A stretch of 60,374 nucleotides of DNA from Octopus sinensis (GCF_006345805.1 NW_021832568.1:1-60374), one strand, 5' to 3'; numbered from the stretch's first letter, positions 22,721-57,139 are shown. Notes: generated by a model not told the origin, from the letters alone. Made by a program: numbers and translations.

Positions 22721-22743
22721 ATATATACACAGACACACAAATG

Positions 22744-25769: not shown

Positions 25770-25827
<58 letters not shown>

Positions 25828-25883
25828 TATCTACTCAAGTATAATATATATATGTATATATATACAAATATATATGTCTTGAA

Positions 25884-25920
<37 letters not shown>

Positions 25921-25934
<14 letters not shown>

Positions 25935-30295: not shown

Positions 30296-30375
<80 letters not shown>

Positions 30376-30452
30376 TATATGTGTGTGTGTGTGTGTATAC
30401 AAATATATATGTATTGAAGTACATATATATGTATATATATATATATATATAC

Positions 30453-30506
<54 letters not shown>

Positions 30507-32388: not shown

Positions 32389-32447
32389 TCACCAAGAAAG
32401 CAAAAGTACATACAGAGAATTCATAAACAAAAATAATTGAGTTGTGG
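32389..32447 (-). CDS. Candidate terminal coding exon: hydrophobic tail (T)TTQLFLFMNSLYVLLLSW*
   Basis: Long pyrimidine tract ending ttattttcAG; phase 1 matches the Ig exon donor; TGA at 32391-32389; AATAAA on minus at about 32091-32086. Confidence 0.55.
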
Positions 32448-32699
32448 CTGAAAATAACAGTGAAATAAAGAATTTAAATATTAAAACAAACAGAAATTAA
32501 GAAACAAAATGTGCTAGTTGCTAATTACATCATCATTAGGTTTTTGTTTTCTAACTGAATAAACCAGTCTCACGTGTATTATATATAGGTGAGAGAGATG
32601 GTATGTGAAAGCACATGGTTGGATGTATAAAAGACAAAAAAGAGTGAAAAAACTACAGAAGGCTGGTGTGATATGGTTAAAGAATATATTTAAATCATT

Positions 32700-34390
32700 A
32701 TGTTAGAAAAATGTTATAAAATTTTGCGTATAGTAACATAATTTTTGGAGAAATAACCGGTTTCATATTTTCTTTTCAAATTTCTAAATGAAACCATTAA
32801 AAAATCACCAAAGACGTACATACATACACCAAACCCAGGGGACCTAAAACTACGACAAATTGTAGCTGGCCCAGCCTGTGAAACACACAGACTAAGTCTA
32901 TTTATGGTCATTCTCCTTAAACACATCAATAGCCATACCAGAAGTGACTTGGATATGTTAAATCACCTTCCAAAAAAAGTCAAGGAAGAAACAATTATGG
33001 TTTCATTTGATGTAGTTAATTTATATCCCAGTATACCTCATAATTATGGGATAGAGGCTATTCAGTTCTGGCTGGACCAATTTCCGGAAGAAATACCAAA
33101 AAGGATCAGTAAAAAATTCATAACTAAATCGGTTGAATTCATCCTACAAAATAACCACGTCATGATTGTCAATGCATTTTACCATTCAAAATCCAGAATT
33201 GTTATGGGTACTAGGGCAGCACCAGTCATTGCGAACCTAACAATGGGCTACCTGGAGGTAATAAGATGCCAAGAATCTTTATCTACCTTTGGAAACCCCC
33301 TTTCCCAATACATAAATGAAAATTGGAAAAGTTTCCTAGACGACTGTTTCATAATCTGGAATGAAAACAAAGATAAACTCCTAAAATTCAAAAGCCTATT
33401 GAACAGCGTCAACCCAAACATACAGTTCACAATGGAGTACAACCAAAAGGAGCTTCCATTCTTAGATATACTAATTAAAAAAATAAACCTAAAAACAGAA
33501 ATGGACATATTTTACAAAACCACAGATGCCAAACAATATCTACTTTTTGATTCATGCCACCCAAGACACACCAAAACAAACATCCCATTCAACCTTGCAA
33601 GAAGGATATGCACAATAGTGTCAGAACAAAATACCAGAAACTTTAAATGGCAAGAACTCAAAAACACCCTAATTGACAGACACTACCCAGTTCAACTCAT
33701 AGAGGATGGAATCAGACGTGCAACACAATTGACAGAGAAACCTTAAGAAAAGTTCAACACAGCAACACACCTTCACCAAAAAAACTGCTGTACATATCAA
33801 CATACAACCCCAGAAACAAAGAAGCTTTCACCATCATCACCCAAAATTTACCAATGCTACATAAGGATCCCAAATTAAAGAAAATTTTACATATACATAA
33901 ACTCATTAAAAGCTACAAACAACCGAAATCACTAAAAAAGATCCTCACAAAGGCAAAATTATTTTCTAAAATAACGGATGCAAAAGTGAAGAAATGTGGT
34001 AGACCACATTGCACAACATGCCCAAACCTTCTAGAAGGATCAGAATTCCTCTTCAAGGAGGGACAAAAATTCAAAATCAAATCAAATTTTACTTGTGCTT
34101 CAGAAAACCTGATTTATGCCATAAGATTCTTGGGCTGCCACCAAAACTACATAGGGTCCACGGGATTATCGCTCAGATGCAGATGCACTCTGCATCGACA
34201 GCAGATTGCATTCCCATAATACAGAATGATACCCTTTAGTGAACATATTGAGTAATGTGCAAAGCAACTACTACCACAATTTATAATCTTTCCATTCTAT
34301 CAATGTACCATTGGAACACCAACACAAGTTAGATTAAATAAGGAAACCTTCATTGAAAAATATAAGCCAAAACTTAACCATTTCTAACAT
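32700..34390 (+). mobile_element. Penelope-like element (RT + GIY-YIG), frameshifted
   Basis: ORF 32904..33746 (SFDVVNLYPSIP, MGT, FLDDCF, LPFLDI); 33854..34219 (CGRPHCTTC, NLIYAI...YIGSTG); terminal FIEKYKPKLN. Confidence 0.93.
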
Positions 34391-34539
34391 TTTTAAATAA
34401 GGAAACTCACCTCATTGAAAAAAATATAAAGCAAAACCTAACCACTTGTAACATTATATTCCTTCTAAACCAAATCATGTTAAATTAGTCATTCCCAACA
34501 TGCTTGATTATCTCCTGTGTAAACTGTGGTATGGAGGTA

Positions 34540-35060
34540 TGATATCTACTATGTATATTTCCTATTTAGTATTGGGGAGGTTTCCTTTATAAGGATGTAC
34601 TCCCGTATTTGTCTGAGTGTTGGGTCTTTTGGGTGCTTGGATAAGATGTGGATGTCAAGTTGACCCAAGTTACCTCCATGGTGGTCGAGTATGGAGGACT
34701 GTTTTTTGTCATCATATTGTCTCAGATGTTCATTTAGTCATTCCGCAATGCTCCTAGATGTCTCCCCTATGTACATCATGCTCATGTCTTTACAAGCACC
34801 TTCTGTGCATCTTATGCTGTAAACTACATTTTGAGGTCTACAGTTAATGCCAGGGTTAATCCTACTTACCATGCAGTTATCATTGGTGCATATGGTATTC
34901 TCAAAGGGGTACATCCTACATAGTTGTGATCTAACGGAGTTCCCTGACTTTTCAAACCCTGGCATTAACTGTAGACCTCAAAATGTAGTTTACAGCAGAA
35001 GATGCATAGAAGGTGTTTATAAAGACATGAACATGATGTACATAGGGGAGACATCTATAT
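34540..35060. mobile_element. Second Penelope-like GIY-YIG fragment with fold-back duplication
   Basis: NCRPQNVVYSIRC...YIGETS encoded on both strands (34738..34965 minus, 34847..35080 plus). Confidence 0.8.
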
Positions 35061-37100: not shown

Positions 37101-37319
37101 AATAATCATATGAATTTCACCATTATTCTTAAATAAATGGTATCTTATTTTTTCAAAGATATTTATGAACTAAAAAAATTTAAGTTAAAACATATAACTT
37201 AGTGTTTATATGTCCAGATCTAATATTTCGAATATTAAGGGAAAAAAACAAACTACGTATTCGTGTCAAAATGCATTGAGTGCCTCTTTCTTTCGTTTCT
37301 CCAACCATTCAGTTCACTC

Positions 37320-37455
37320 TATAAGTTGGTTGGTGTTAGCAAGGGCATCCAGTCATAAAACCCCTGCCAAAACAGTTAGTGAAACCTGAGGCAATCTTCT
37401 GCCAAGCCAGCCTGTCAAATATCCAACCCAGTTGTGAAATGATGATGATGATGAT
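37320..37455 (+). mobile_element. RTE-A 3' terminal fragment
   Basis: ggttggtgttagcaagggcatccag ... (GAT)n. Confidence 0.7.
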
Positions 37456-37469
37456 TTGTGGTTGGAGCA

Positions 37470-39660
37470 AAGCTTTTGCCAGATCAAAGGTGATATGGTG
37501 GTGGAACAATCAGGTCGACAGGGCTATAAAAGAGAAGAAATGGGTTTGGAAAGTGTGGAAAAGGGATAGTAGCAAAGAACCATATTAGGTAGCTAAAAGG
37601 GAAGCAAGGTACTAGATTTATCTTGCTAGGGTAGAAGCAGACAGGAAGAGGTTTGCCAATATCTTACAGTATGAAGATCAGAGACTTGAGATTTTGCATA
37701 TTGCTACACAGGTGCGGGAGTGGCTGTGTGGTAAGTAGCTTGCTTACTAACCACATGGTTCTGGGTTTATTGCAACTGTGTGGCACCTTGGGCAAGTATC
37801 TTCTACTATAGCATCAGGCTGACAAAAGTGTTGTGAGTGGGTTTGGTAGACGGAAACTGAAAGAAACCTGTCGTATATATGTATATATATATGTGTGTGT
37901 TAATGTTTGTGTGTCTGTGTTTGTCCCCCCAACATCGCTTGACAACCAATTGTGGTGCGTTTACATCCCTGTAACTTTGCAGTTCAGCAAAAGAGACCGA
38001 GAGACTAAGTGCTAGGCTTACAAAGAATACGTCCTGGGGTCGATTTGCTCAACTAAAGGCACTGCTCCATCATGGCCGCAGTCAAATGACTGAAACAAAT
38101 AAAATTGTAAAAGAGTGTGTCAGAGAGGATTGAGATTTTGTGGGAGATAAAATGTGTACAGATAGATAATGGCATGCTAGTGTTTAGTGGTTTGGAAAAG
38201 AAAAATGTGTGAAAGAGCAACTGTGAAGGGCTATTAAATGTAGAGAATGAATAGAAAAAAGGAGGCTCCCCATCATGTGAACCCAACAGAGGAGCCAACC
38301 ATTCATATAGACAGCAGTATGATAAATAATGTAATTAAAGATATAGAGACTGGAAAAATCCTTGGTTCCTCAGGAGTCACTGTTGAAATGCTTAAAATAT
38401 CTATAAAGTTGGATACAGTCTAGACACTGTTTAGTTAATTAGGTTATTCAGGAAGGTATAATCCCCAATGACTGGTATACCAGGATCATAATCAGTGACT
38501 AAAAGAGTAAACGAAATGCACTAGATAGAATTAATTATAGAGGCCTCAAATTGCTCGATAAAGTGATGACAGTTATGGAGAGAATAATAAGCCAATTAAT
38601 TAGAAAGAAATGAAGCCAGATGAAATGCAGTTTGGCACAGTAATGGGAAGAAGTCAGGCAAGTACAAGGGTAATATTAAGCTAAGAATAAGCTGTAGTAC
38701 TTGGCATTAGTTGACCTGGAGAAAGCATTCAGCAGGGCACCCTGCTCTGTAAAATGCTGGTCTTTCAGGAAGCTAGAGATAGATAGACGGCTTGTGAAAA
38801 GCAATTCAGGTATTGTACAGGGTTGCTATAAATAATGTTAGAATTAGTCATGAGCACAGTGATAAATTTAGTGTAGGGTTAGGTGTTCATCAAGGCTCAG
38901 TCCTCAGCCACCTCCTATTCAGAATTGTCCTCCAGGTCATAACAGAGGAATTTAAGCCTGGAAGCCAATGAGAACTACTATATGTAAATTACCTTGCTCT
39001 CACAGCAGAATCAGTAACAAAACTAGAAAAAGGTTTCAGGTGTGGAAGCAAAGCCTGGAATCAAAGAGCCCTGAAGTTAAGTTAGCAAAGACAAAAGCCT
39101 TTGTAAACAAGAAAACAAACAGGACCCTACTCACTTCAGGTAAATGGTTTTTCTCAGTATGTAAGAATGGTGTAGGCAGAAATTCATTTCAGCGTATTCA
39201 GGGTATGCAATGGATGCAAAACAGGTGCAGTGGAACAGTAGGGAGGTTAACAGAGAAATTAGTGTCTGTATGTGGAAAATGCATAGGAGTCATAAAATCT
39301 ACAAGAATACAAGAAATGGATTTTCACAAATGCCCAAGAGGTGCTCTAAAGGTACTGGGCAATTTCTGCTAGCTAGGTGACCTAATTTTCAGTGGAAGAG
39401 GAAATGAAATTGCTAGAATAAGATGGAGAAAGTTCAGAGATCTTTTACCTCAAGTGGCAACCAAAAGTCTCTCTTTCTGAGAGAAAGGAAGGTTGTGTGA
39501 TGCCTGTGCACAAACAGCAATGCCACGTGATAGGCAGACATGGTCCTTGAATGTAGAGGGCATGCAAAGACTAGAAAGGTATGAAGTTACAATGTTCAAT
39601 ATGATGTGCAATGTTTGTCTGCATGTTTGTCTGCATGAAGTTACTATGTTCAGTATGATG
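37470..39660 (+). mobile_element. Old RTE-A copy interrupted by a SINE
   Basis: WWWNNQVDRAIKEK, HQGSVL, decayed PHD (CKNGVGRNS), CDACAQTAM. Confidence 0.85.
37710..38115 (+). mobile_element. tRNA-derived SINE
   Basis: Colinear with 337-748. Confidence 0.8.
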
Positions 39661-39920
39661 CGCAATGTTTCTCCTCACCATCTCCAGCATCTCAGCCTTA
39701 TCAACCTACAGAAGTCAATGGAGCCTGGTACAGCTCCTGGCCATGCCAGCTCCAGTCAAACCATCTCATTCATACCAACATGGAAAATTGATGCTAAACG
39801 ATGACAATGATGATGGTGATGATGATAATATATACTTGTGTGTATGTGCGTGTGTGCATATTCAAGAATAACATTTCTGATGACAATCAGAAATCCAACC
39901 AGTATACACACTAAAAAAGA

Positions 39921-40083
39921 TAATGCATTGAAAGAATGTTCATTTTAAGATACGAAGATGATGATGATGACTTCTCAGCTTTTTAGAATAATTAACAACA
40001 TATATAGGATAAAATACTTACAGAAAAGAAAAATCATCATCATCTTCATCATGTATTAAAATGAACATTCTTTCAATGTATTA
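39921..40083. repeat. Inverted repeat with ~50-bp arms
   Basis: 39921-39970 versus 40034-40083; outer 28 bp 27/28 complementary. Confidence 0.8.
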
Positions 40084-40224
40084 TTGGCAGTATTAGTTTG
40101 TTACAATATTTTGTGAATTGACTGAAACTCAAAGTTAGTGTTTATAGAAATATACTTTCTTCATGGTCATAATAGATTAATATTGACAGGAAAATACATA
40201 CAAATGATTTATATTTGTACTTAC

Positions 40225-40497
40225 TGAATAATGGTTTTGCATGAAATCTTGTCTTCTCACCAGTGGTGCTTTCACAAACAATTATTTGCTCAATATTTTG
40301 AAGAAGTGTGATGTTTATGATCCTGACATTGTTAGGAAGCACATTTGCTTCAAAGTATTCAGTTTTAGCAGTTCTGCTAATGATGTATCTATCAATTCGC
40401 CAGTGTTTAAGGTTTTGCTTTTCAAGAGGACATTCAAAAGTTACTGGTTGATTCTTCCTGGTAAATTTTGTGCCACCCTCAATTAATCCAAGAGAAA
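40225..40497 (-). CDS. Host gene coding exon 2: single Ig-like domain
   Basis: ttttcatttccttcAG acceptor and GTAAGT donor; 273 nt, phase 1-1 as typical of Ig exons; VTFEC...HWRI...IVCES gives B-strand Cys, C-strand Trp, F-strand Cys; NIT sequon; lies inside ORF 40142..40531. Confidence 0.8.
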
Positions 40498-41074
40498 CTG
40501 AAGGAAATGAAAATATAAAACACATATACATATCATTTAATAGCTACCTTGTCATTCCAAGAAGTAATTTTTCTAATGCAAGAACAACAACTTGAAATAA
40601 ATTAAAATTAAGAGGATTAATTGAAAAATTCCTTTTAAAGCATAATTTAAAATTAAATGTGAATAGATGTACAGAGAATATTTCAGAGAGAATAGGAATC
40701 ACACCCATGTATCATAGATAATGCCTAAGGCATTAACTTTCTGTCAATGACTCAAATATTATAATCATATCATCTGATCAGGAGAAATGTAAAAGAAACA
40801 TGTCAATCAGAAGCACACACCTACTTTAGGATGTGAAATCAGACATTCAAATATGAAGAGATATTCGGTTCCTGAACTTTATTTAAATAACACAAATGAT
40901 TACCATTTTGTTCTATTTTCTGTGAAATCTGTATTTGTATTCACATTTAGTTTTAAAATTTAAAAGATTTTATTTATTATATTTAATTGGGCAAAAATTA
41001 ACAGCGGACAGAATGATGAAGAAGACAGTGAAAATATTGATTTCAAATTTTGGTACAAGGCCAGGAATGTTGGG

Positions 41075-41255
41075 GGAGGGGATAAGTTGATCACATTGAC
41101 CCCAGTGCTCAACTAGTACTTATTTTATTGACCTGGAAAAGATGAAAGGCAAAGTCTCAACCTCAGATGAATTTGAACTGAGAATGTAAAGCCGGACAAA
41201 ATGCCACTAAACATTTTGCCCAGTGTGCTAACGATTCTGCCAGTTCACCACCTTA
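41075..41255 (-). mobile_element. Second tRNA-derived SINE family
   Basis: Minus: aaggtggtgaactggcagaatcgttagc...gttcaaatt...tttgcctttcatctttt...gtcaataaaataagtact. Confidence 0.65.
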
Positions 41256-41278
41256 AAAACAATGAGAATATTAAAAGG

Positions 41279-43650
41279 TAGGGAGTGGTATTAAAAAGTT
41301 CCCAGATTAGTTATCTGTATATATATAAAAGGCATGATTTGTGTGAGTGTGTACGTGTGTGTGTACGTGGATGTAATTTATGCATGTCCACATAGCATGC
41401 ATGTCGCTCCAATTTTAGGACATTCATCATGACCCTAGCTGTATTTTTGTCAACTTATTTTTACCAGAGGCACCAGCATAGTGGTAAAAATAAATTTCTG
41501 ACCAAAACTTTTAGTAATTTTCAAGTCGGAGAAATCCACCATTATTTACAACAAGAGTTAAGTCCCCTTCTAGTAACAAGTAAGTTTTTGTTAAAAATTT
41601 GTTAAGTATTTTGTCGATATACGGGCAACACACACACACACATACACACACACACGAACATATATCTGAACAAAACACATGTATGCAATATGTGTATGAT
41701 CGTGTGTGTGTGTGTATATATATATATATTCTTAAAACTTAGTTGTGATCTGAATGTAACCACTTCTGACACAGAGGAGCGGGAGCTCTTTTGGGCATTC
41801 TATTTTCCTTGCTGGAAGGCTTCCCAACCCACGGGCAAAGGGGGGTTAGATGATGGGGGTGGTGTTTTCAAAGGGCTGGCATGTGCAACCTGATCACATG
41901 TGCAACCTGATCACATGTGCATGTGCAGCCTGATCAACCCATGCGCTCCCATCACGACACCGATTCTGCAGAACTGAGTTGGGTGTGAAAACCAACTTTA
42001 AAGAATAAATATTTATGTTTTGAATCAACAATATTGTGTTCGGTTAAGTCCTATTTGGGATGAAAACCAATTAACTGATTCCTCATGGGGTTTTCCATTT
42101 AATCAGGATAAAAAAATAAAAAAAAATCGATATAAACCGATTCCTTATAGGATTTCCCAATAAAATTGGCTACACCCCATTTTCAACCATAACTTTTACC
42201 GAATTTGATGTATTTTGTTCAAACTTGATGCCAGCCTTACTTAGGAGTCATGGGATCTTTGAATACTCTCAGTTCTCTAAAAACGAAAAAAGATCGATGA
42301 GTGGGAAAAAAATCAATAGACCGACCGATTCCTTATGGGATTTCCCAATCAAGTCATCTGCAACTCATTTTCAGCCAAAATTTTACCAATTTCAACAGAT
42401 TTCGCTCAAATATGACATCGATGTTACTTAGTTTGGTTTGAAATAACGAACTTCATTAGCTTAATAATCCTAACTTAATCCTGGGCAAAGCCAGGCTACA
42501 CTGCTAGTGTTTAATAAAAAAATAACTTGTTTACTTAAGTTTTAACAGCATCTCTTTTGAAAAAGTCATCTTGCACAGCAATACACTGATCCCAACATTC
42601 CTGCCACTATTGGAATCTGGCCTGGAGATCATTTTCTGTAAGCAAGTCGAGCACTTTCTGTGATTCACTCTTCATCATGACAACAGTGTTAAAATGGCAA
42701 CTTTTGAGCTAAATTTTTACCTTGGCAAAGAGATGGCAGTCTGCAGATGCTAAACCTGGCAAATAGGGCAAGTGTGGGAGTGATACCATGTTGTTTTTGG
42801 CAAGGAACTCAGATAGGGAGCAGTCATCATGAAGAATCCACTTCTGTGTGCTCAATAGATCTGGTTGTTTAGCCAAATGTCCTCCCTCAAATGCTTCACA
42901 ACATCACAGTAAAATTCTCCATTGACTGTCTGGCCTTATGGGATGAATTCTTTATGCACAATACTGGTGATGTTGAAAAAACAATGAGCATGCTCTTGAT
43001 TGAGCTGTAGATCTGTTATACCTTCTTTGGTTATGGTGATGAAGGCCTCTTCCATTGGGATGATGGTTGCTTCATCTCAGGGTTGTACCCATAGACCCAA
43101 CTCTTATCACCGGTGATGATTCTTGACATAAAGGATGGGTCATCAGAAGCCTGCCAATGGAGATCTTGACAGACTTTGACATGATGTTCTTTCTGTTCAG
43201 TAGTCAGCAAGCAGGAGACAAACTTGGCAAAGACACACCACATGTTCAATTCAGATGTTAGGATTGCCTCCATGAACCAATATGACAAACCGGCATCAGC
43301 AATGTTGTTGTCTTCAGATGATCCTCATGCACAAGCTGATGAATTTTACAGGCAGACATCATGGTAGGTCACCCAGATTGCTCTCTGTCTTCTTAGGATG
43401 TTCTTCCACTTTTGAAGCATCCACACTAATTGAAACTTGCATACAACTCATTGCCTCATCGCTGTAAGCTTGCCAAAGCATGATCAATGTCTGTAGCAGA
43501 CTTCCCAAGTTTAACGCAAAATTTCACATTGGCTCTTGGTTCAAACTTTCAGTTTATGACAAAATTGCAAACTATAGCACAAACAAGATCACAAAAACAA
43601 ATTTCACAACTTGCGAAGTAAACACTAGCACCGCTGAGGGTAATATTCTC
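41279..43650 (-). mobile_element. Mariner transposon split by a Helitron; 5' boundary uncertain
   Basis: TIR-like gggagtggtattaaaaagttcccag at 41281; transposase AKFVSCLLT..IITGDKSWVYGY (43031..43288); C-terminal remnants 42560-42760. Confidence 0.85.
41314..42507 (+). mobile_element. Complete non-autonomous Helitron
   Basis: A|TC start at 41313/41314; hairpin cctgggcaaagccagg and CTAG|T at 42504-42508; no TSD. Confidence 0.9.
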
Positions 43651-44049
43651 TGCAGATGCACAAAAGCTTTTTTCAGAGTTATTTACTTTGAATTGTTATT
43701 ATCTCCTATCATTAGCCTGTCCTTACATAACATGCTTCATGATTTTAGTATACATACCTTATCAGTGCTTCCTCTTAAGTTCTATATACTCTGGAATGTA
43801 TTAAAGCCATTTTGGGGCTACTTTGTTTGAAATCTTACTATCGGGTAATTAATTTCATGTTATTACATAACTGACTTCACAATTTGGGAATTCATAACTT
43901 ATTGGAATTCCTAAAAACAAGTTCCTGTGTAAGACTGATACTTTGTATTGTTGTTAATGGATTAGCGAAACAATTATGAGAATGGAACAAAGGGACAAGC
44001 CCCACTTTCCTAGGAATTACCGGTTATGTCAGCAAGTATATATATATAT

Positions 44050-44830
44050 ATAAATACATATGTATTTAAAGAATGTAGTTGTGTAAAGATGGAATAATGT
44101 GAGATGCTCACCCCTTCACGGGAAGGAGTAAATTCCATACATGAAAAATTCAACTACATTGACAGTCACATAAATTTGAAAATGAACACCCAGACAAGCC
44201 TGGATCTCTCTCTCTGCTGGATTTCCAAATCAGGATCACAGAGGATGGTTACATCCACATGAATCTTTACAAAAGAAGCAGTGACTAGGAATCTATTCAT
44301 GCATTATGATTCGGCCCGGTCCACCAGAGCCAAAACTGCACATATACAAAATTAAATAACATGCATAAGAGACAGATGCAATGAAGTAAGTGACAAAGCC
44401 ATCAGCATGAAGCGGTTCCTCAGGAACTTAGCACACAACGGTTATCCACCATCCACAGCTAAAAGACTGCCTCTGTGAATAATGAAAGTGGGTAAACTAC
44501 ACAGAGAAGCCCATAACATCAGATCAGAAACATGCTTCCTTAGACTGCCCTACTTAGATGACAGAACATCAGCAGCTACCCAACATCCATCCGCAGGGAG
44601 AGACTTAACATACAGCTGGTACACACCAGTCTATCCCTGAAGAAAGCTCTATCAAGGAAAAATACCTAAGGGAGCACTGTGGAGTGCACACTCACCAACT
44701 GCCCCATCAATGACATCAAAACATGCAGTATATGAGGTCGTCTGCAATAAATGTGGGGCACCCTACGTAGGGAGCACTACTAGGAAACTACACATTCGAA
44801 TAAACAAGCAAATGCAGATAGACACTTTGA
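44050..44830 (+). mobile_element. Decayed Penelope-like element
   Basis: SLSLLDFQI thumb region; KHAVYEVVCNKCGAPYVGSTTRKLHIRI GIY-YIG. Confidence 0.8.
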
Positions 44831-44845
44831 TAAAGAAGCCCCTCA

Positions 44846-46410
44846 ATTTGGGGTCCTTGGCGAATTTGGAGTCCTTGGCACTATGCAGTGGAGCCCAGTT
44901 CTAGTATTTGTGTAACTCTCGATGTGAAAGTTTGGGACAAGTCCTTCCAGGATCTTTCAGATGTATATTATGGCATATCTTTATCGCCTACACTCTAAGG
45001 AATAGAGTCTTAATCTCTTGAGCCTTTCCCAATAGCTTACATGCTATATAGAGGCTATCTTCTTCGTGTAGCTTCGTTGGATTGCCTCAAATTCTGTGAT
45101 TAATTTGACACTGGTTGGTGACCATAGCTGAGAGCAATAGTCAAAGTGGCTAAGGACAAGTGTCCTCCAGAGGACCGTCATGGTTTCCTGGTCTCTTGTT
45201 CTAAAAGCTCTAAGAATCCATCCGGTCAGCCACCTACATTTCATTGCCAATTTAGCAACATGCACATGAAAGGTTGCATCATTAATCATGTAAATACCTA
45301 GGTCTCACACTGATTGTGCCTCTGGGATTGCAATCCCTCCAGGTCCAGTGTATTTATTGAGTATTGCATTTAGTTTTGCATGCTGATAGCATAAAGCTTG
45401 AAACTTTCAGCATTGAACTGCATGCTATTCTTTTCAGCCCATTTGTATATTTCATCCAGCTCACATTGCAGGTGCATAGTGTCTTCAGGGTTCTGTATTA
45501 CTGTGAAACTTTTGTATCATCGGCATAACTTGTGATCGTGGCTCCCTGCATGGATGAGGGCATGTCTGAGAGGGCCATTATGAACAGTAGTGGTCCCAAA
45601 ATAGTGCCTTGAGGAACACCGCTCACTATTTGCATGTTATTGGAGGTGGCCCCATTGGAGGTGGCCACCTGACTTCTATCCTTCAGAAAGTCATGAAGCC
45701 ATTCTCCCAATTTCCCAACTATGCCAAGATCACACAGTTTGTGACATATCATTCCATGATCGACTTTATCAAAGGCCTTTGCAAAGTCGAGATATATGAC
45801 TTCCACATTTGAGTGGTTGAGCAGTTGTTTCAGTACCCAGTCATTGTGTTGTAGGAGCCGAGTTAGGCAGCTACTTCCTGGCTGGAAACCATGTGGTGTC
45901 AGGCAGCAAGTTATTTTCTTCAAGGAAAGCAGACTCAAGAGATTAAGACTCTATTCCTTAGAGCGTAGGCGATAAAGATATGCCATAATATACCTCTGGA
46001 AGATCCTGGAAGGACTTGTCTCAAACTTTCACATTGAGAGTTACACAAATACTAGAACTGGGCTCCACTGCATAGGGCCAAGGACTCCAAATTTGCCATC
46101 AAGATGTAGGACAAGATACTGTGATAGCCTGGGCTTCAAAGGTCCACAGCTCTTCAATATCCTCCCGAAGGACCTGAGAGACCTGCATGGTGTGGATGCA
46201 GATGTCTTTAAAATAATGCGGGACCTCTTCATATCAGGGTCCCAGATGAACCAACATCACAGCAGGAGGTGTGCAGATAAGGGCAGCTGCATCAAACTCT
46301 CTCATGCACCAAATGTCAATTGCTAAAAAGCATTCGTGAAGTAAAATCATGTAGCAACACCAAATGGCGGTGCCCCAGCATGGCCACAGCTCGTGAGCTG
46401 AAACTAGATA
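44846..46410. mobile_element. CR1-clade LINE with inverted 5' segment
   Basis: Minus RT 45498..45938 (YLDFAKAFD, GVPQG, SYADD) and 45044..45289; plus-strand C-terminus and tail 45924-46410. Confidence 0.9.
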
Positions 46411-46459
46411 AAATGAAAAAATGAAAAAATATATATATATCCACATATATATATATATA

Positions 46460-46945
46460 TGGATAGTAGAAATATGTTACGGAAAGAAAATAAAAAATAC
46501 ACATGGAAATGTAAGGGTAAAATAAGAAAAATCAACGAAAATGCACATTGCAAATAGAAAAAGGCTATTTATGACAGGTAACGACAAATATATACATTTA
46601 GATTGACTGAGGTAGTAATACGAGTCATAAAAGTCCTTATTATGAGATGATTATAAGATGATAATAATGTAGGAGAACAAAACGAATGATGGTTTACGCA
46701 AAACTATTCATCGTTTGAACAACACCGGTTAATGAAGGGTGTCAGGTCTAATAGTTCCTGAGAAAAAAGATTATTTGTAAGGGAGGTAAGTAGTTCTGGA
46801 TTTAGAGATGTGAGTAGTGTAGGAAGTGTATAGGGTTTAGTGGTTTCAATTGAAGAGTTAGTGGTGTTCTGTATTGAGTTGTGTGTTCATATTTAGTTGG
46901 GGGAGAAATTTATTGATGAAAAATGCCTCTTTATAAATGGATATA
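46460..46945 (-). mobile_element. Possible Penelope-like 3' end
   Basis: Minus frame IYKEAFFINKFLPQLN resembles the GIY-YIG C-terminal motif, followed by UTR-like sequence. Confidence 0.5.
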
Positions 46946-47014
46946 TATATATATATATATCCATGTATATCATATATATCCATATATATCATATATATCC
47001 ATATATATCATATA

Positions 47015-47300
47015 TATCATCATTTAATGTCCGCTTTCCATGCTAGCATGGGTTGGACGATTTTGACTCAGGGCTGGTGAACCAGACGGTCGCACCAAGC
47101 TCCAATCGTGATCTGGCAGAGTTTCTACAGCTGGATGCCATTCCTAATGTCACCCACTCCAAGAGTGTAGTGGGTGCTTTTTATGTGCCACCAGCACGGG
47201 GCTAGTCAGGCGGTACTGGCAATGACCTCGTTCAAATCTTTTAACACATGCCACTGGCACAGGTGCCAGTAAGTCGATGTTCGTAACAATCACGCTTGAA
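47015..47300 (-). mobile_element. RTE-A 3' UTR fragment
   Basis: catcatttaatgtccgctttccatgctagcatgg ... ctggatgcc. Confidence 0.85.
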
Positions 47301-47325
47301 TTGTGCTCTTTCACGTATATATATA

Positions 47326-48198
47326 ATAGAAGAGTTACCCGGCGTTGCCCAAGTTACACACAATTGAAGAATTAGACTTTTCTGTTATATTTTCTGTAAT
47401 GAACTGGAATACCTATGTTTCGAATTTCATCAAAATTGCAGATGAGGGTTATTTCCCTCTTTACACACACAAACAAAATTGTAATTGTGCCACATGTATC
47501 CCATACTACTGATTTTTATGCGCATATTCCAAAATTCCAGTCTTATGGAACCTGTTAAAAGGATTTTGCTCCTGAAAAGTGGAGGTCATAGAGCTCTAAA
47601 ATGTGAGAGTTAATGCCCCTATTGGGGGTGGGCATCTTAATGTCAACCAGAGAAGTTGAATTGTTGAGAATCTTTTTAACTTTGGTCTTATATCTATTGC
47701 TTGAATTTCTTTGAAATAGGAAATATATGTTCACTGGGTTTGTAAAAGAGAGCAAAGCTACAGGAAACCAAAAGACGAATCATCACAATAAGCGGTCTGC
47801 TATCCTACCCTAGTAGATACCACTCCCAATGTAGGATTCCTCACCATAAATAATGCTCATCTTTTATGCTCAGGTAACCCTACAGCTTCCAAGAGCACAA
47901 CTGTATTCATTTATGCTTAGATAAAGTGACAAAATTGTGGGTGTTAAGTCCCCATGGAGGGGTCTTTCTAACTTGTAAGTAGATGAAATTTTATAAATAT
48001 TACTTCATTTGTGTCTAATACCTATGATTAAAATTTCATCAAGAGCAAAATTATATGAATTGTCATGGGGTTTATGGCCCTTATGCATAGAATATAATTT
48101 CCAAATTTCATAAAGATTCATTCAGTACTTTTGACCTAGTTTTGGATCATAAAAGAAATTACTAAAATTTGGGAGTTAAGGCTCCCATTAGGGTGTTA

Positions 48199-48200
<2 letters not shown>
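47326..48200 (-). mobile_element. Non-autonomous Helitron, decayed; 5' end uncertain
   Basis: 47326-47385 matches the 3' terminus at 11291-11350. Confidence 0.6.
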
Positions 48201-48238
<38 letters not shown>

Positions 48239-48446
48239 TATTTGAGGAAATAAAATCCAAAACTTATTTAGAAGTACTAAATCAAGTTTCACACAATATA
48301 ATATATATTATTATTTTATTTTTTAGCAATTTACTTAATCATTGACATTTTATTGCTATTTTAATGTTAATATTTCTATTATAGGTAACTTTCTAAAGGG
48401 TGTAATTTAATTGTTCATTTTGAATTGATAAAAGATGGTTTTTTTC

Positions 48447-48508
<62 letters not shown>

Positions 48509-48910
48509 TAGATAGATAGATAGATAGATATATAGATAGATAGTTACATACATACATTCATACATACATACATACATACATACATACATACATACATACA
48601 TACATACATACATACATAAATACATATAGATATACACACACACACACATAAAAAGACAAATTGATAGATACAACTGAGTGGGCAAACAAAAATATGAGAC
48701 ACAGCCTAGTGCTTTATTTATGTCGATAAGCCTGGTACTTATTCTATTAGTTTGTTCTTGTGAAAACAGTCGGTTGTGTGGATGTAAATAAATGAACAGC
48801 AGTGATGAGGGTGAAACACAAAGACACACACATACACTTACATATATACATACATATATATATATATATACAGTTGATTTGTTTCAGTTCCTGTCTACGA
48901 AATCCATATA

Positions 48911-51320
48911 TATTGTTGTTGGCATCCTTTTAGTCTCGCGAGACAATGGAGTTGCATATAAAATAATCTAGTCTGGCTTTTACATTTCATGTCCTAATAC
49001 ATCTCCTGCTTTGGCTGTGTAGTCCTATACTGGACAAACAATCCCTCAAGCAGGTGCCACAAATGTAGCGAAGACTTTGCCTGGCTGGTTGTAATGTCAT
49101 AGTTTCTTCTTGAAATCTTTTCTTGTTTTTCCATTTCTCCTCTCTCTCTATGTCACTCCTTTGTGTTCCCTCTTTTACAGTACGTCGCCAATCTCCACGG
49201 TTGCTGGCAACTGCTTCCCAGTTGGTTATATTAATGTTGCAGGCCTTCATGTCCCTTTTGCAAACATCCTTGTATCGTAAGAACTGTCTTCCCACAGACC
49301 TAGTGCCCCAAGCAAGCTCTCCATAGAGTATGTCCTTGGGGATTCTGCCATCTTCCATATGGCTAACATGTCCAAGCCACCTCATACGTCTTTGTGTGAG
49401 GAGTGCAAACAAGCTTGGTATTCCTGCTTGCTTGAGGATATCTTTGTTGGAGACATGGTCCTGCCATTTGATGAGAAGGATTTTCCAGAGGCAGTGCAGG
49501 TGAAAGATATTTAGGCGACGCTCTTGGCGTGTATATGGTGTCCAAGACTCACTTCCATACAGTAGAGTGCTAAGTACACATGCCTGGTAAATCTTCATTT
49601 TTGTGGTCTTGGTCAGCTTATTGTTGTCCCATGCCCATTTGGAGAGTTGGGCCATCACAGCATCTGCCTTGCCAATGCGTATATTTAGCTCAGCATCAAG
49701 GGATAGGTTGTAGGTGACGGTAGAGCCAAAATAAGTAAACTTCTCCACTTCCTGTAGTCTGTGGTCTCCAATATGTGTGTTTGGGATGTCCTATGTAGCC
49801 TGACCCATGATGTTGGTCTTCTTGAGGCTGATAACTAAGCCAAAGTCACTACATGCTTGCTCAAAACAGTTGATAAGCCTTTGCAAGGCTTCTTCTGTGT
49901 GTGATACCAGAGCGGCATCATCAGCAAATAGTATTTCCTTGATCAGGACACTTTTGATTTTGGTCTTGGCACACAGACGCGAGAGAGTGAACAGTTTCCC
50001 ATCACTTCTACTGTACAGAAAGATTCCATCATCTGATGTCTCAAAGGCATGTGACAGCAGCAGTGAGAAGAAGATGCCAAATAATATAAGAGCAAGGAAC
50101 AACCTTGCTTTACCCCATTTTTTATTTGGAAGGCGGCTGATGTTGAATCGTTGTGCTGTATGATGTCTTGCATATCATCATGGAAAGATTTGATGATCCC
50201 CAGCAGCTTTAGTGGACATCCGATTTATTGGAGCAGGATGAAGAGGACTTTTCTACTTACCAAGTCAAAGGCTTTTGTCAGATCAATGAAGACCATATCT
50301 AATGACATTTTCTGCTGTCTGGACTTCTCCTGAAGTATGGAGAATATCATGTCAATAGTTGATCTGCTTCTTCTAAAGCCACACTGTGATTCTGAATAAA
50401 TTTGAGAAGTAAGCAGTTGTAGCCTGGACAGGATAACGTGAGCAAAGGTCTTTCCAACAGTGCTTAGAAGAGATATTCCACGGTAATTGTTACAATTACC
50501 ACGGTCACCTTTGTTTTTGCAAAGTGTAATGATGTTAGCATCCTGCATATCCTGAGCGACTGTACCCTCTTCCCAGCACTGATACAGAAGCTCATGAAGG
50601 TGCTGAAGCAGGATGGTGTTTTTGCCGGTTTTGATGATCTCTGAGGGGATGCCATCTTTTCCCGGAGCATTATTTCTTGCTAGGGAGTCAATAGCCTTGG
50701 TGAGTTCTGCTATAGATGGCAGACTGTCAAGTTCACACATGACTGGGAAGATCTTGACATCCTCGATTGCAGACTCAGCTACCGTGGTCTCCCGTGAGTA
50801 GAGATCCTGGTAGTACTCCACTAATCTATCCATTTGCTTGATTTGGTCCTTGATGAGATCTCCAGTAGTTGATTTCAGAGGGGCTGACTTAGTTGCGGAT
50901 GGACCGAGGGCCTTCTCAAACCGGCATACATCCCACAGGTGTCACCACCGTCAGCAGCTGACTGGATACTCTGACAGATTTCCTGCCAGTACCTATTTGC
51001 ATGGCGTCTGGCAGTCAGTTGGGTTTTATTTCTTGCCTTTCTGAGTTCTTTGAGTGACTTTGTAGAAGAATCACTCTTGTATTGCATCAGAGCTGCACAC
51101 TTTGCTTCGATAACTGTTTCCAGCTGAGAGCTCAGCACTGAACCAATCTGGGTTTTGCCTTTCTCTCATGCCGAAAGTATCTATTGATGTGGTATACAAA
51201 GCTTCCCTGATATAATTCCAGGGAAGCTTTCAGCAGAGGAGTTTGGGCAGCTACTGAGGGCAAACTTGGTAAAAACAGCAAAACATTTTTGTAGTGTAGG
51301 GTCCAAGGTTCTGGCAGAGT
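48911..51320 (-). mobile_element. RTE LINE family B copy 2, 5'-truncated
   Basis: ORFs 50225..50833, 49791..50102 (LFADD), 48987..49748 ending in CGTCLRDCLSSIGLHSQSRRC; (CAA)n tail. Confidence 0.95.
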
Positions 51321-51324
51321 ATTT

Positions 51325-51830
51325 TTTCAATTCAATTCAATTTTTATTGGCTCAAAAAGCAAAAGCAAGGCCATGTAGGGGGACAGAGAGATATGTACAG
51401 GGAGGGTGGTCATACAAAGAGTTCAGGCTATTTCTGGTCAAGAGAGACTTTGAACCGAGCAGTCATCGGCATCTTCACTATCTCATCCGGCAGCTTATTC
51501 CACGGATCCTCAACCCGGACGGAGAAAGCCCCTCTCCTTCAATTGAGATGAAATCGTCATAAATAGAGCTTTTCGGAGTGACCCTGCAACCCACGCTCTG
51601 GAGCAGGAGTGAAGAACAGCTCTTTTGAGAGGTTACACTTTCCGCTTATGATGTTGTGAGTGAGAATGAGATAACCACGGTGGCTGTGTTTTTCGAGAGA
51701 ATAAAGGTCGAGCGTCTTCAGCCTTTCTTCATAAGACAAATGCTTGAGATCAAGAACCATGCAGGTAGCCAGCTTCTGGACTCTTTCGAGATGATGTATG
51801 TCTTTGAGGAGATAAGGAGAAGAAGCTTGA
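51325..51830 (-). mobile_element. CR1-clade LINE 3' fragment with (TTGAA)n tail
   Basis: ORF 51557..51955 homologous to the C-terminus of 51861..53747. Confidence 0.9.
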
Positions 51831-51837
51831 GGAGATA

Positions 51838-53835
51838 AGGAGAAGAAACACAAGCCCTGGGTGACGAAGAAGGTTAAACGAGAACGTCGACTCAGAGATA
51901 TTGCTTGGGCTGAATTCAAAAATCTGGATTCGACTGCAGCTTTTGAGGTGTACAAAACTCAACGAGACCGAGCCGTGAAAATTGAAAAGAAGGAACGCTT
52001 CAGTTATGAATACAAAATCGCGGCAAATGCCAGTAGCAATCCCAAAACCTTCTTTGCCCATGTCCAGCGGAATTCCCGCTTGAACAACCAGATTGCAACG
52101 TTGGTAGACTCAACAGGCGTATCGATTGAGGATCCTTATCAACAGAGTCAATTATTTGCTGAGGCTTTTTCAACTATTTTCAAACAAGATGATGGTCGTG
52201 AACCCCCTCCATTTGATAGATCGGTACCTCCAATGCTTCGATTGATCATCACGCGGGACCAAGTCAAACGTGTTATTCAAGGCCTCGATGTCAACAAGGA
52301 TCACGGCCCTGACGGCATACACCCACTGGTTATCAAAGCGTTGGCTCCGGTCATTTGCGAGCCCTTAACACGACTATTCAATATGTCATTGGCGACGGGT
52401 GTTATACCTGCAGACTGGAGAACAGCGATAATCTGCCCAATTTTCAAGAAAGGGAGCCGCGAAGGCCCGCTTAACTACCGACCGGTTTCCCTTACATCAA
52501 TAATCAGCAAGATGTTGGAAACCATCCTTAAGAAAAGTATGATGCTCCACCTCCTAAACACAGCCTCGATCACTGATTCCCAACACGGCTTCGTGCCGAA
52601 GAGATCATGCTTGACCAACTTACTAGTAATGGAAGAATTGGTGACGCGCATCCTCGATGATAGTGATGCTGTTGACATCGTTTTATTGGACTTTGCCAAA
52701 GCTTTTGACTCGGTAAACCACCGCCTACTACTTGTCAAGCTTCAAGCATATAGTTTCCATCCGGATATTGTACGATGGGTTGGTGCCTTCCTCTCAGATC
52801 GCTCCTTCCAAGTTCAAGTTAATGGTTCACGGTCCAACGTCTCCAGTGCGAGCAGTGGCGTGCCTCAAGGTTCAGTGCTTGGGCCCTTGTTGTTCTTAGT
52901 CTTCATAAACGACTTGCCCGACGACCTCACGCAACACACCCTTCTATTTGCCGACAATATCAAACTGGTCGCTCCTCGCGGTAGTATAGAGGATCTTCGT
53001 CGATGCCTCCACCAAATTTGGAAGTGGTCTAACGATTGGGACCTGTGTCTGAACGTGTCAAAGTGCTGTCATCTGCCTGTCGGCTCTACTCCTGCAACTC
53101 AACTTGATTTCGAGCCGGGTCGTCTGCTGCTGGAGAGGACCGATCAGGTAAAGGACCTGGGTATCTTGGTGGATTCCTCCTTTTCGCCTTCGGCCCAGTG
53201 CGTCCATGCTGCCAACAAAGCGCGCGGAATTCTGTTTTTGATTCGACGGTCATTCGGAATGCTCACAGCAGCCATATTCCTGCCACTCTATGTCACGCTG
53301 GTGAGACCCATATTGGAGTATGGGATTCAAGCCTCTTCTCCTTATCTCCTCAAAGACATACAGCACCTCGAAAGAGTCCAGAGGCTGGCTACCCGCATGG
53401 TTCATGGTCTCAAAAATTTGTCCTATGAAGAAAGGCTGAGGACGCTCGACCTTTGTTCTCTTGAAAAACGCTGCCGCCGTGGTGATCTCATTCTCGCCCA
53501 CAACATCATAAGCGGGAAGTGTAACCTCTCGAAAGAGCTGTTCTTCACTCCTGCTCCGGAGCGTTGGCTGCGGGGTCATTCCGAAAAGCTCTACCTGCGA
53601 CGATTTCATCTCAATCGAAGGAGAGGAACTTTCTCCGTCCGGGTTGCAGATCCGTGGAACAAGCTGCCAGACGAGATGGTGAAGATGCCGACGACCGCTT
53701 TGTTCAAAGCCTCCCTGGACCTCAAGTGGCCTGAACTCTTTACATGAACACCACCCTGTACTTAACTCCATGTCCCCCTACATGGCTTTGCTATTTGCTT
53801 TTGAGCCAAATTAACTAACTAACTAACTAACTAAA
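51838..53835 (+). mobile_element. Young 5'-truncated CR1-clade LINE, 628-aa open RT frame, (TAAC)n tail
   Basis: GPDGIHP, NYRPVSLTS, QHGF, LDFAKAFD, GVPQGSVLGP, LFADN; no endonuclease domain. Confidence 0.95.
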
Positions 53836-53920
53836 TATATTTTTTAACCTTTTAAAACAAGCCTTCTGTAGTTTTTTCACTTTTTACTATTTTCTATATA
53901 TTCAACCACGTGCTTTCTCA

Positions 53921-53973
<53 letters not shown>

Positions 53974-53974
53974 G

Positions 53975-54100
53975 ATGGGCTTTCAGTTATATCTGCCACA
54001 TCTACTCAGAATGCTTTGGTTGATCTGGAGCTATAGTATAACATACTTGCTTAAGGTGCCATGCAGTGAAACTGAACCCAAAGCTAGTTGTTTGGAACAC
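53975..54100 (-). mobile_element. SINE head, decayed
   Basis: ttaaggtgccatgcagtgaaactgaaccc matches the SINE head reversed. Confidence 0.6.
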
Positions 54101-54417
54101 AAACTTCTAAGCTCTATAACTGTGCCAATATATAGTAGCCATGAAAATAGATGTAGGCTAGTCAGGTTCAAGTCAATCTGCTAGAAATAGCAGCCAAATT
54201 CACCTCAAATCACCACTTATCACCTTAATAATGGAAAATGAAGCTGCAAAAACAATATGAAATATCAACATATGCAACACCTTTAAACATAATTTATCAG
54301 CACTGGCCTTAGGATCAAACAGCAATAGTTATGATTAAATTCTACAGTGGATACAAATTTATGACAATTAAAAATTCTGAATAAAAATGTTTATATAAGA
54401 GACATATTGTTACTTAC

Positions 54418-54472
54418 CACAGAAGCATTGTGCAAGGAACAAGTATTTCAAATATAATGGGTTAAATTCCAT
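54418..54472 (-). CDS. Host gene coding exon 1: signal peptide MEFNPLYLKYLFLAQCFC (exon starts at 54475)
   Basis: Minus strand: ttttctttgtAG acceptor, ATA ATG..., 18 codons + 1 nt, then GTAAGT donor (phase 1); joins in frame to the 40497 exon. Confidence 0.7.
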
Positions 54473-57139
54473 TATCTACAAAGAAAATGATAAATACTGA
54501 TAGGAACAATTTCTACAAATAGTCCGTGATGCAAAATAATAGTGTAAAAAATAATTCAACATAAATCATAGGAACTTGTCTTTGCAAAAACAGGAACCCA
54601 TGAGCAAGTATTATCATGGTGAAATTAGGAAGAGCAGTATAGAGGATAAGTAATAAAAATACTAGACACAGTTAATCTAAAAAATGCAAAGAAAAAACAG
54701 TGTTTTGTTTAGTCATATCTTTAGCATCTTCCATTACACTCTCTCTTTCAAATACCTCAGAACATCCAAGTAAAATATGATTTTCTATAGGGGTCACTAT
54801 GAATTTTTGAAACTATTTAAATGTAATTTCTACTGTACATTTTCTTGGAGAGCATCCAAAAACAAACATTTTGATACCTCATTTGTGAAATTTGAATGAA
54901 TATTTTAGGAGATATGATGACTTGGGTGTCCAGTGAATTTGTTAAAATCTTGCCTAATTAGCCTACATGAATAATTGACCATTTTGTAATATATCTTTGA
55001 AACTGAGGTGATAACCAACTTGTATTACACAAATAGGTGGCTTTCTTTTTCTTTCTATTTTTTTTCAGGTTTTTGAATATAAAACTTTGTTTTGGGAGCA
55101 ATTTTAAAAATATTTATGTAAAACCTATTTTGTTACATGTAACAAACAGTCAATTTCAGGGTTTTCAGACTTAGCTAAATTCAAAAGTACGAGTCACAAG
55201 GACTTGAGTTTTGGCATATTTGTAATAGATACAAGCTAAATAAATCCTGAGATTTGGGATCATGACACCATTTCAATACAATTTTAATGGGCTATTAAAA
55301 ATAGCTATAAGCAGCAGAGTTTGGGGTCAGGATGTCCATCTAAGCTGAATTTTGATGGGGATTTTTCCAATTTTCTTTTCACCACCGCCTTGGATATGAC
55401 AGGGCAAGGTATGTTATAGAAAAATTTATTGAAAATCTATGATTTTTTCCAACCTCCTTTCCTCCCCTCTGGACTGATTTTGGTCTCTTTTTTCTGTACA
55501 ATGCACTTAAAAAAACAAGAGAAACGTTTGGGTTATGAAATGATCTTTGAAAACATTTTCAAATGAAAAAGTGTATGATTTACAGAAGATTTAGCTGTTG
55601 CTTCTAGCACATGACATGATGACCTGGCACCTTTCTCAGAATTGCATGTAGACCCAGATTAAAAGACAAACAAAATGTAAAATCTAATTCCTTGCTTTAG
55701 CATTAAAAGCTTGAATTAAAGATATTAAAAACATCTGTAACATAGCAAACTTGTTAGTAGGAGAGAGAGACAAAAACCTAAAATGACTATGTAAACACTA
55801 CTACAAATTATCCAACTATATTCAAAATTGGGAAAGAAAATGCTTCATATTGAACCTAAATAGTCTACAAAATAATATTCATTGTACAATATAATTGTGT
55901 TTGCAAAATTTGACCAATATTTCTCAATGAAATTTACATGTACAAGAATATCCACAAGGTATAATTCAGACATCAATCTTCACACTTTGTTACACAACAA
56001 GAGGGAATAAAGATTCACAATACAATCATTCTATGCTAATTATGGGTTCTAGAAGTCTGAAGCAGCTCATTTTAGTGCATTTTTCTATAGAAATATGTTT
56101 ACTTAGTAATTAGTTCATTTCTTGAAACACTGGCCCAAACCAGAGCCTTGGATTCTGAAACCTCAGATTTGTGTTCTGTTTAACCTCTCACCACAGAGAC
56201 TAGTAGTGTCAGTGTACCATTTTCTTTATTGACTTTGCACTTTTTCACCATACTGTGGCCAGATTCAGCAATGATCATATCTAACTGGCAAGTAATTTTT
56301 CTTTCTTATGACATAAAAATCTTGAAGAAAATGTACTATTTTCTAAGTGAAAGTTGATGATAACATTTTCACTTTTATATGTCATAGGGAATATTTGACC
56401 TACTTTCATTGATTTTTATATCAAAATAAAGCAGTAAAAGTCCTTTTCATGACAGTATGGTCTGCAAAAGAATCAAGTTATAGTGCTCCAGCACACTGAA
56501 CAAAGATGAGAGCTACCTTTCAGTAGTCAAAATAAAAAAAAAAAAGGACAAACTTTGTGAATGGGTGGAGATACCAGGGTGATTGAAGGAAAATGGCATA
56601 AAATGCCATGAGTCGGATTTTGATTCAAATTATATGAGAAGAAAGTTCACATAGAAAACTTTCAAATGAAATATGATTTTGACAAAAAAATGATAAAGCA
56701 AACAGTGTATTCTTGTATTGTCAAACTGTACTTGTCTCCCTCCTATGGTGCTTTATAGTGATAGCTTTCCAGAATCAGCACTGCCAGTTACAACATTTGC
56801 GAATGAATATGTCTATGTAAACAATGCAATTGAAGAGAGAAAATGAAGGTAATGGGTGTATTTACATATTTCAAGAGTTATTGCTCTTTCATTAATACCA
56901 CATCTAACCCACCAACAGTCCATGGATACATTGCTTCAATACCCAATATGTTCAACAGTGTGACACAACTGGATAGACTAATTTACATATTAAACGCATT
57001 CCTGGCAAACAGTACACACATATAAATTGCTGGCAAGGTCAGATTATATCATTTTGCAAACATAATATATGATACTATACTTACACTAGTATAGTATATG
57101 CTATACTTACACTAGTATAGTATACTATTACACATCCAG

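Follow-up and report, generated by a model that had tools for sequence, protein, structure and literature searches.

LOC118761327 of Octopus sinensis, a candidate secreted single-domain relative of octopus-only multi-Ig receptors with a fast-changing domain exon

Vertebrate clusters of immunoglobulin (Ig) receptor genes include soluble truncated members, such as LILRA3 in the LILR cluster, and soluble members of this type can compete for the ligands of the receptors. The FREPs of Biomphalaria are secreted proteins in which N-terminal Ig-like domains are joined to a fibrinogen domain, and the genes for conotoxins and for snake-venom phospholipase A2 (PLA2) have exons that evolve faster than their introns. 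To our knowledge, cephalopods offer hardly any known examples of variable recognition molecules. The VCBPs of amphioxus are secreted as well and carry N-terminal Ig-like domains together with a chitin-binding domain (PMC13428168). Here we examine LOC118761327, a gene of Octopus sinensis that lies in a stretch of 60,374 nucleotides (hereafter “the window,” with positions counted from its first letter), and we compare it with these systems and with a set of larger Octopus proteins that contain several Ig domains.

We consider it reasonably probable, although by no means certain, that LOC118761327 is an annotated yet unstudied gene for a small secreted protein with a single Ig-like domain, and that it represents a cut-down relative of large surface receptors confined to octopuses. 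Its three coding exons, all on the minus strand (Table 1), would encode a precursor of 113 amino acids, a secreted offshoot that retains only the first domain (domain 1) of such a receptor. The larger proteins are multi-Ig type I proteins of Octopus (LOC115212116 of 1220 amino acids, LOC115212114, and, from O. bimaculoides, LOC128247863, LOC128247864, and LOC106874545), all of which are named either “uncharacterized” or “Ig-like domain-containing.” LOC118761327 is homologous to them in its signal peptide and first domain, where the Cys, Trp, and Cys residues and the sequence NILNIT occupy the same positions, and it shares the same exon layout and a conserved block that starts the following intron. 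However, it ends after domain 1, has neither a transmembrane helix nor Tyr-motif repeats, and closes on a repeat-derived terminal exon, and the identity of its domain 1 to those of the multi-Ig receptors is only 33–54%.

LILRA3 provides a working analogy, in that a secreted protein without transmembrane or signaling parts would have arisen in a fast-evolving tandem family of Ig receptors. However, there is no sequence relationship between the two, and LOC118761327 retains one domain only. The likeness to VCBPs and FREPs lies in a predicted secreted product, an N-terminal Ig-like domain, and high copy or allelic variation concentrated in that domain. In contrast to the chitin-binding VCBPs and the fibrinogen-bearing FREPs, the LOC118761327 product has nothing after its Ig domain. 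As with the conotoxin and PLA2 genes, an invariant signal peptide and a conserved flanking intron accompany a hypervariable mature-peptide exon, a pattern seen here in six sequences, but the fold is different.

The initial annotation of the window had proposed a cryptic gene that gene finders could miss, composed of three exons. These exons do join into 387 nucleotides that translate to the 128 amino acids given, and a search with this product against 5.8 billion clustered proteins returned three matches, all from O. sinensis and all of 113 amino acids. One of them (P0001) is 100% identical to the query across 86% of its length, which corresponds to exons 1 and 2 (residues 1–110), and the other two, P0002 (LOC115232233) and P0003 (LOC115230241), are 83% and 80% identical. 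An exact-sequence look-up of P0001 identified it as the RefSeq entry “uncharacterized protein LOC118761327” and the window as the entire O. sinensis contig VCDQ01000950.1 (GCA_006345805.1). The coding sequence range of P0001, 54472..37510 on the minus strand, falls inside the window, and the gene is therefore already annotated and not cryptic. Exons 1 and 2 are real, with chance far exceeded. The start had been placed at 54475, which adds an extra ATA codon ahead of the ATG at 54472; the remaining string is as described. An in-frame TAG (54478–54476) lies two codons upstream of this ATG. Literature searches with six LOC identifiers (LOC118761327, its two paralogs, and three larger relatives) found no paper naming any of them in the collection searched, and a search for the multi-Ig family also found no paper.

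The translation confirms the features from which an Ig-like domain had been proposed. C41 and C93 are 52 residues apart, W51 is located at +10, and a sequon is formed by N80-I-T82. Ahead of the domain, the N-terminal segment has K9, a hydrophobic core at residues 10–21, and the small residues S20 (−3) and G22 (−1). The same segment heads the type I membrane relatives, and an AlphaFold2 model sets residues 5–19 apart as a detached helix. On a sequence-based reading, the N terminus is signal peptide-like, and cleavage would occur near the junction of G22 and L23. The mature protein would then comprise about 91 residues, with a C41–C93 disulfide and a glycosylated N80, and it would be secreted, because the C terminus is not hydrophobic.

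The AlphaFold2 model was built with a 10-sequence alignment of family first domains and reached a predicted local distance difference test (pLDDT) score of 80.4, with values of 82–95 across residues 30–110. An alignment of the three paralogs only gave an unusable model (pLDDT 41). The former model is a nine-strand beta-sandwich with strands at residues 28–31, 36–40, 48–53, 56–58, 61–63, 67–71, 78–83, 89–95, and 100–107. C41, W51, and C93 are invariant in the 10 family sequences and are placed by the model at the end of the B strand, in the C strand, and in the F strand, so that both the beta-sandwich and the Cys/Trp/Cys core triad of the Ig superfamily are found. Most of the top Foldseek matches in the PDB are Ig domains with a probability of 1.00, including T-cell receptor alpha chains, obscurin Ig58 (TMt 0.62), myomesin/obscurin-like-1, and the CD226/CD155 D1 complex, with a few generic bacterial beta-sandwiches mixed among them. 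We accept the term “Ig-like” for this predicted domain on structural and contextual grounds rather than on those of sequence models, which agrees with the single Ig-like domain originally proposed.

The gene structure is shared by both paralog loci, which are located on contigs designated here L002 and L003. Each of them has the three exons in common with LOC118761327, down to identical sequences at the splice sites, and ends on the same short exon (TLLT and TLST before the stop codon). In the window, donor 1 reads GTG/GTAAGT at 54418/54417, acceptor 1 reads ttcatttccttcag at 40498/40497 with a good polypyrimidine/CAG, and donor 2 reads TCA/GTAAGT at 40225/40224. A spliced gene with phase 1 introns, as originally proposed, is borne out by the annotation and by the splice sites of the paralogs. 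Exon 1 and its flanks are 98.9–99.6% identical to both paralog loci. In O. bimaculoides, the LOC128247863 locus (L005) matches exon 1 at its 5′ end with 76% identity, and the intron homologous to intron 1 measures about 3 kb there. The Ig-like domain is contained in a single symmetric phase 1-1 exon, whose homolog in a Logan contig (L004), a fourth copy, has a length of 282 nt.

The annotated C terminus reads PLF-TLST, such that the product ends four residues past domain 1, and the segment 37523–37510 is the sole site in the window where an AG precedes TLST and a stop codon in phase 1. Over the 220 nt past the stop codon, the divergence between paralogs is 0.5–2.3% compared to about 5% in introns (Fisher p of 0.04, 0.006, and 0.0006). 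This conservation fits a functional terminal exon followed by a 3′ untranslated region (UTR). The terminal exon lies inside a dispersed repeat with further copies at 3264–3489 and 19756–19811 of the window and with antisense copies in L005. A tRNA or short interspersed element origin of this repeat was considered and set aside, as no tRNA-like sequence was found in it.

The first 100 nt of intron 2 are better conserved than the adjoining exon 2. This block is 100% identical in the three paralogs, 93% identical in L004, and 90% and 82% identical in two O. bimaculoides genes, and it has a branch-point-like CACTAAC followed by TTTGAGTTTCAG. A mini-intron or alternative acceptor about 97 nt past the exon 2 donor (CACTAAC..TTTCAG, near 40128) was rejected as a conserved exon. 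L004 has CAT in place of CAG, and the resulting tails differ and stop at different places.

The most distinctive property of the gene is the rate at which its domain exon changes. The three paralog proteins have an identical signal peptide (0 amino acid changes) and a nearly invariant C-terminal half, but differ heavily at residues 43–68. Flanking introns diverge by 4.5–5.6% between copies and served as the reference for Fisher tests. Exon 2 diverges by 9.5–11.4% (p of 2e-3 to 1e-4), which is 2–2.4 times faster than the introns, whereas codons 43–68, a segment picked after the data had been seen and tested as 40350–40427 (an offset of 1 nt from 40349..40426), diverge by 18–30% (p of 3e-5 to 7e-11), or 4–7 times faster. 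This core is 58–82% identical between copies, compared to 86–100% for the adjacent 100 nt of intron. Nei-Gojobori ratios of nonsynonymous to synonymous rates (dN/dS) are 1.8–2.1 for the mature region and 2.3–6.4 for codons 43–68, values that alone are not significant on so few sites. Codon changes assigned to single lineages comprise 23 nonsynonymous and 4 synonymous changes, and at seven codons each of the three copies has a different state; codons 56, 62, 65, and 66 are among these seven. No copy has an indel or a stop codon in exon 2, compared to 6–13 indel events in the introns. Relative to L004, L005, and a second O. bimaculoides gene (L006), the center of the exon is 53–68% identical, compared to 79–93% for the 100 bases that open the following intron.

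In V-type domains, the region from the BC loop through C′, C″, and D carries the equivalents of CDR1 and CDR2, the first two complementarity-determining regions. The pattern seen in these six sequences suggests either diversifying selection on a binding face or short-tract gene conversion from hypervariable relatives, and it argues against simple neutral decay. The fast-changing BC/C′-C″-D face may correspond to the binding surface of the protein.

A family profile built from the three paralogs and run with hmmsearch against 1.84 billion representative proteins detected seven further proteins (P0004 to P0010), with E values from 8.6e-27 to 1.1e-7. The match begins at the extreme N terminus in five of the seven (P0004–P0007 and P0009), which share the motif MEFxLLxLKYL..QCFCVSL, and it starts at residues 84 and 45 in P0008 and P0010, respectively. 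Apart from a 107-aa open reading frame (ORF) called on a genomic Logan contig, these proteins are 400–1220 amino acids long. Six of the seven match Ig models downstream (Ig_3, I-set, C2-set_2, and others), P0007, P0009, and P0010 have a transmembrane helix, and long tails of repeated Tyr-containing units are found in P0009 and P0010. Every named member is “uncharacterized” and comes from O. sinensis, O. bimaculoides, or O. vulgaris, which upholds the suggestion that the protein is lineage-specific. A word-indexed homolog search with the family alignment recovered the three paralogs and one Logan ORF only.

In the initial annotation, no ortholog had been recognized. We find two close paralogs and, beyond them, the multi-Ig receptor family, with which the signal peptide and first domain are shared. 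The homology is evident from the profile E values, from tblastn searches in which independent O. bimaculoides proteins match exon 2 with E values of 1e-17 to 1e-19, and from collinearity of the window with LOC128247863 in the 5′ flank, exon 1, the domain 1 exon, and the start of the next intron. Two of the O. bimaculoides members are numbered consecutively as loci and are separated by about 0.5 Mb on chromosome CM046605.1. LOC118761327 itself has no further Ig domains, transmembrane helix, or Tyr-motif tail.

Two of the larger gene models have features of their own. Residues ∼870–1220 of P0009 (O. sinensis LOC115212116) form a tail of repeats of about 25 residues with two tyrosines each (..EPRYLPMKHPD..DVYVSVSRKPD..), and the YxxM-like and YxN-like contexts of these tyrosines suggest SH2-type signaling. 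This model may be chimeric, because its gene range spans 780 kb with another Ig gene nested inside. In the 446-aa model of O. bimaculoides LOC128247863, the last ∼70 residues (374–446, encoded at 54833–55033 of L005) match repeats dispersed in the window (copies at 20280–20500, 2795–2923, and 38443–38595). This model, too, thus closes on a transposon-derived exon, and it may describe a family member that is truncated or wrongly terminated.

The simplest history consistent with these sequences would begin with the copying of a receptor gene's 5′ portion, which comprises the promoter region, the signal-peptide exon, and the domain 1 exon. This copy would then have gained a terminal exon from a repeat, and the gene capped in this manner would later have multiplied into at least two or three copies. 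The product is probably a soluble binder or decoy. Such a soluble domain could recognize targets on its own, or it could serve as a decoy that competes for the ligand of domain 1 of a membrane receptor.

From position 60374 to ∼41620, the window is ∼99.9% identical over ∼18.7 kb to positions 4100–22830 of L002, although the two carry separately annotated genes. Exon 1 falls in this stretch, as does almost the whole of intron 1 with its retroelements. The identity then falls abruptly to ∼95–96% just upstream of exon 2 and stays at this level through exon 2 and intron 2. Beyond ∼37245, about 265 nt past the stop codon, the window is unrelated to L002, and its homology to both paralog contigs ends. 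Such a mosaic may have arisen through recent crossover or gene conversion, or it may stem from allelic haplotigs or a duplication in the assembly. Because three distinct exon 2 sequences are present, a diploid must have two loci or more. Should the window and L002 prove to be alleles, a single animal would also show extreme polymorphism in this domain.

Several points weigh against the view that LOC118761327 encodes a functional secreted Ig-like protein. The model is a computational RefSeq prediction, protein searches found no orthologous small protein annotated in O. vulgaris or O. bimaculoides, all three gene copies sit on short unplaced contigs, and the mosaic identity with L002 complicates an independent count of copies. 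A canonical polyadenylation signal is absent inside the conserved 3′ block (37290–37509), the nearest AATAAA being at 36656. Evidence for the fold has similar weaknesses. A Pfam scan of the 128-aa product with E values up to 10 gave no family, neither the protein nor the family profile retrieved anything relevant in PDB sequence searches, the Foldseek E values are only ∼1e-3, and an hhalign alignment between domain 1 and a bona fide I-set domain from the family was not significant (E of 0.048, probability of 1%), although the Cys and Trp residues were aligned in register. To these must be added the post hoc choice of codons 43–68 and the small number of sites behind the dN/dS tests, and the excess divergence of the exon could stem from gene conversion with other family members.

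The main competing explanation, which we judge unlikely but take seriously, is that the three copies are dead or functionless fragments. They would be partial duplications of the 5′ end of a receptor gene whose 113-aa frame is closed by the first usable acceptor in a repeat, with transcripts that are noise and clustered sequence differences imported by gene conversion from functional receptors that are hypervariable. In favor of this explanation, the terminal exon lies within a transposon-derived repeat, the copies reside on small, repeat-rich unplaced contigs, and protein searches found no similar small protein annotated in other Octopus species. The sharp break in identity with L002 at ∼41.6 kb and the dN/dS of at least 1, with purifying selection on the domain not evident, are also in keeping with this explanation. 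However, neutral decay predicts equal divergence in exon and intron rather than the 2–7-fold higher rate observed in the exon. None of the three copies has lost the reading frame, either Cys residue, the Trp, the sequon, a splice site, or the signal peptide, exon 2 is free of indels, and the region past the stop codon is better conserved than introns. These observations lead us to prefer a functional gene for a secreted domain 1 protein.

It is considerably less probable that exons 1 and 2 begin a normal full-length multi-Ig receptor gene whose remainder lies beyond the contig or was mis-assembled, with the TLST exon as an artifact or minor isoform. Genes of this family do have very long introns and ranges, since the domain 2 exon of L005 lies 21.5 kb past the domain 1 exon and gene ranges reach 144 kb and 780 kb, and the L002 and L003 contigs end ∼2.5 kb past the annotated stop codon. 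But when the seven family proteins were compared with the 60-kb window by tblastn with E values up to 10, only exons 1 and 2 were matched, and the 40 kb downstream of exon 2 gave no match to the well-conserved domain 2 or to later domains. The selective conservation of the terminal exon region, together with the loss of homology to the paralogs shortly past the stop codon, likewise favors a gene that ends where it is annotated to end.

The initial annotation had instead spliced exon 2 to a third exon at 32447–32389, with a 19-residue hydrophobic tail as a glycosylphosphatidylinositol (GPI) signal or membrane anchor. The acceptor-like site at 32448/32447 has a YAG with 12 of 15 pyrimidines, the frame stays open for 19 codons, and the mean Kyte-Doolittle hydropathy of the tail is 1.8 over 15 residues. 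However, it is one of 55 acceptor-like sites downstream on the same strand with equal or better pyrimidine content, 23 of which are open for at least 19 codons in phase 1, and three of these 23 have a similarly hydrophobic stretch. The stretch is T-rich, a composition that in itself favors Phe and Leu codons. In addition, the tail has no hydrophilic spacer, is short for a transmembrane helix, and includes polar N and S residues. No homolog of the exon was found in L002, L003, L004, or L005, although its absence from L002 and L003 is not decisive alone, because these contigs end ∼2.5 kb past the stop codon and homology is lost at ∼37245. No protein among the 5.8 billion aligns with the tail, and the annotation and both paralogs use 37523–37510. 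The proposed exon is not above chance, a C-terminal hydrophobic signal in a truly spliced exon is not found, and splicing to this site, even as an alternative isoform, is very improbable. Of the two fates originally suggested, only the secreted one fits the annotated structure, and the membrane-anchored one falls with the tail exon.

Given that the gene is already in RefSeq and that the anchor tail is an artifact of exon guessing, the original claim loses most of its novelty. What LOC118761327 appears to offer instead is an example of a secreted single-domain protein made from a receptor gene through a repeat-derived terminal exon, with a domain exon whose rate of change exceeds that of the introns around it, at the face used by V-type Ig domains for binding. 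We tentatively speculate that these genes belong to an octopus-only, tandemly duplicated family of immune-type Ig receptors in which a hypervariable exon for the membrane-distal domain is set between conserved introns (through diversifying selection and/or gene conversion), and from which secreted, domain 1-only decoys or opsonin-like offshoots arose by exonization of repeats. Although this broader proposal is doubtful on the handful of sequences at hand, if true, comparative immunologists would gain a concrete and testable candidate in the form of an Ig receptor family that has diversified and given rise to soluble offshoots.

Table 1. Features of the LOC118761327 locus, in coordinates of the window
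Feature	Position	Strand	Description
Coding exon 1	54418..54472	minus	ATG and opening 18 1/3 signal-peptide codons (MEFNPLYLKYLFLAQCFC); 55 coding bases; donor GTAAGT
Intron 1	40498..54417	minus	13.9 kb, phase 1, swollen by retroelements
Coding exon 2	40225..40497	minus	273 nt, phase 1-1; remaining signal-peptide residues (through G22) plus the complete Ig-like domain
Hypervariable core of exon 2	40349..40426	minus	codons 43–68: BC loop, strand C, C′, C″, and start of D
Intron 2, annotated model	37524..40224	minus	2.7 kb, phase 1
Conserved intronic block	40125..40224	minus	opening 100 nt of intron 2, on the immediate 3′ side of the exon 2 donor
Annotated last coding exon	37510..37523	minus	completes T110 and adds L-S-T and TGA; acceptor ttcttctcttttatag
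Probable 3′ UTR portion of terminal exon	37290..37509	minus	lower paralog divergence than introns
Third exon of the initial annotation	32389..32447	minus	hydrophobic tail; unsupported
Retroelement in intron 1	51405..53752	plus, antisense to gene	628-aa ORF with RVT_1 (51861–53747) between inverted repeats

Outside the two coding exons, most of the contig looks like retroelement debris, in line with the initial description of the introns as mostly transposons. They are rich in retroelements, and reverse-transcriptase ORFs were found. The retroelement listed in Table 1 has an uninterrupted ORF and inverted repeats of 426 nt that are 88% complementary, and it is also present in L002 and L003. Further fragments of reverse-transcriptase ORFs occur on both strands (1844–2824, 25122–25769, 32904–33746, and 50225–50833). 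Simple repeats are present as well, namely long microsatellites of (AT)n and (ATAC)n and a minisatellite of 42/126 nt (22537–22775, 25769–25921, 30296–30506, 48456–48650, and 6145–6421).

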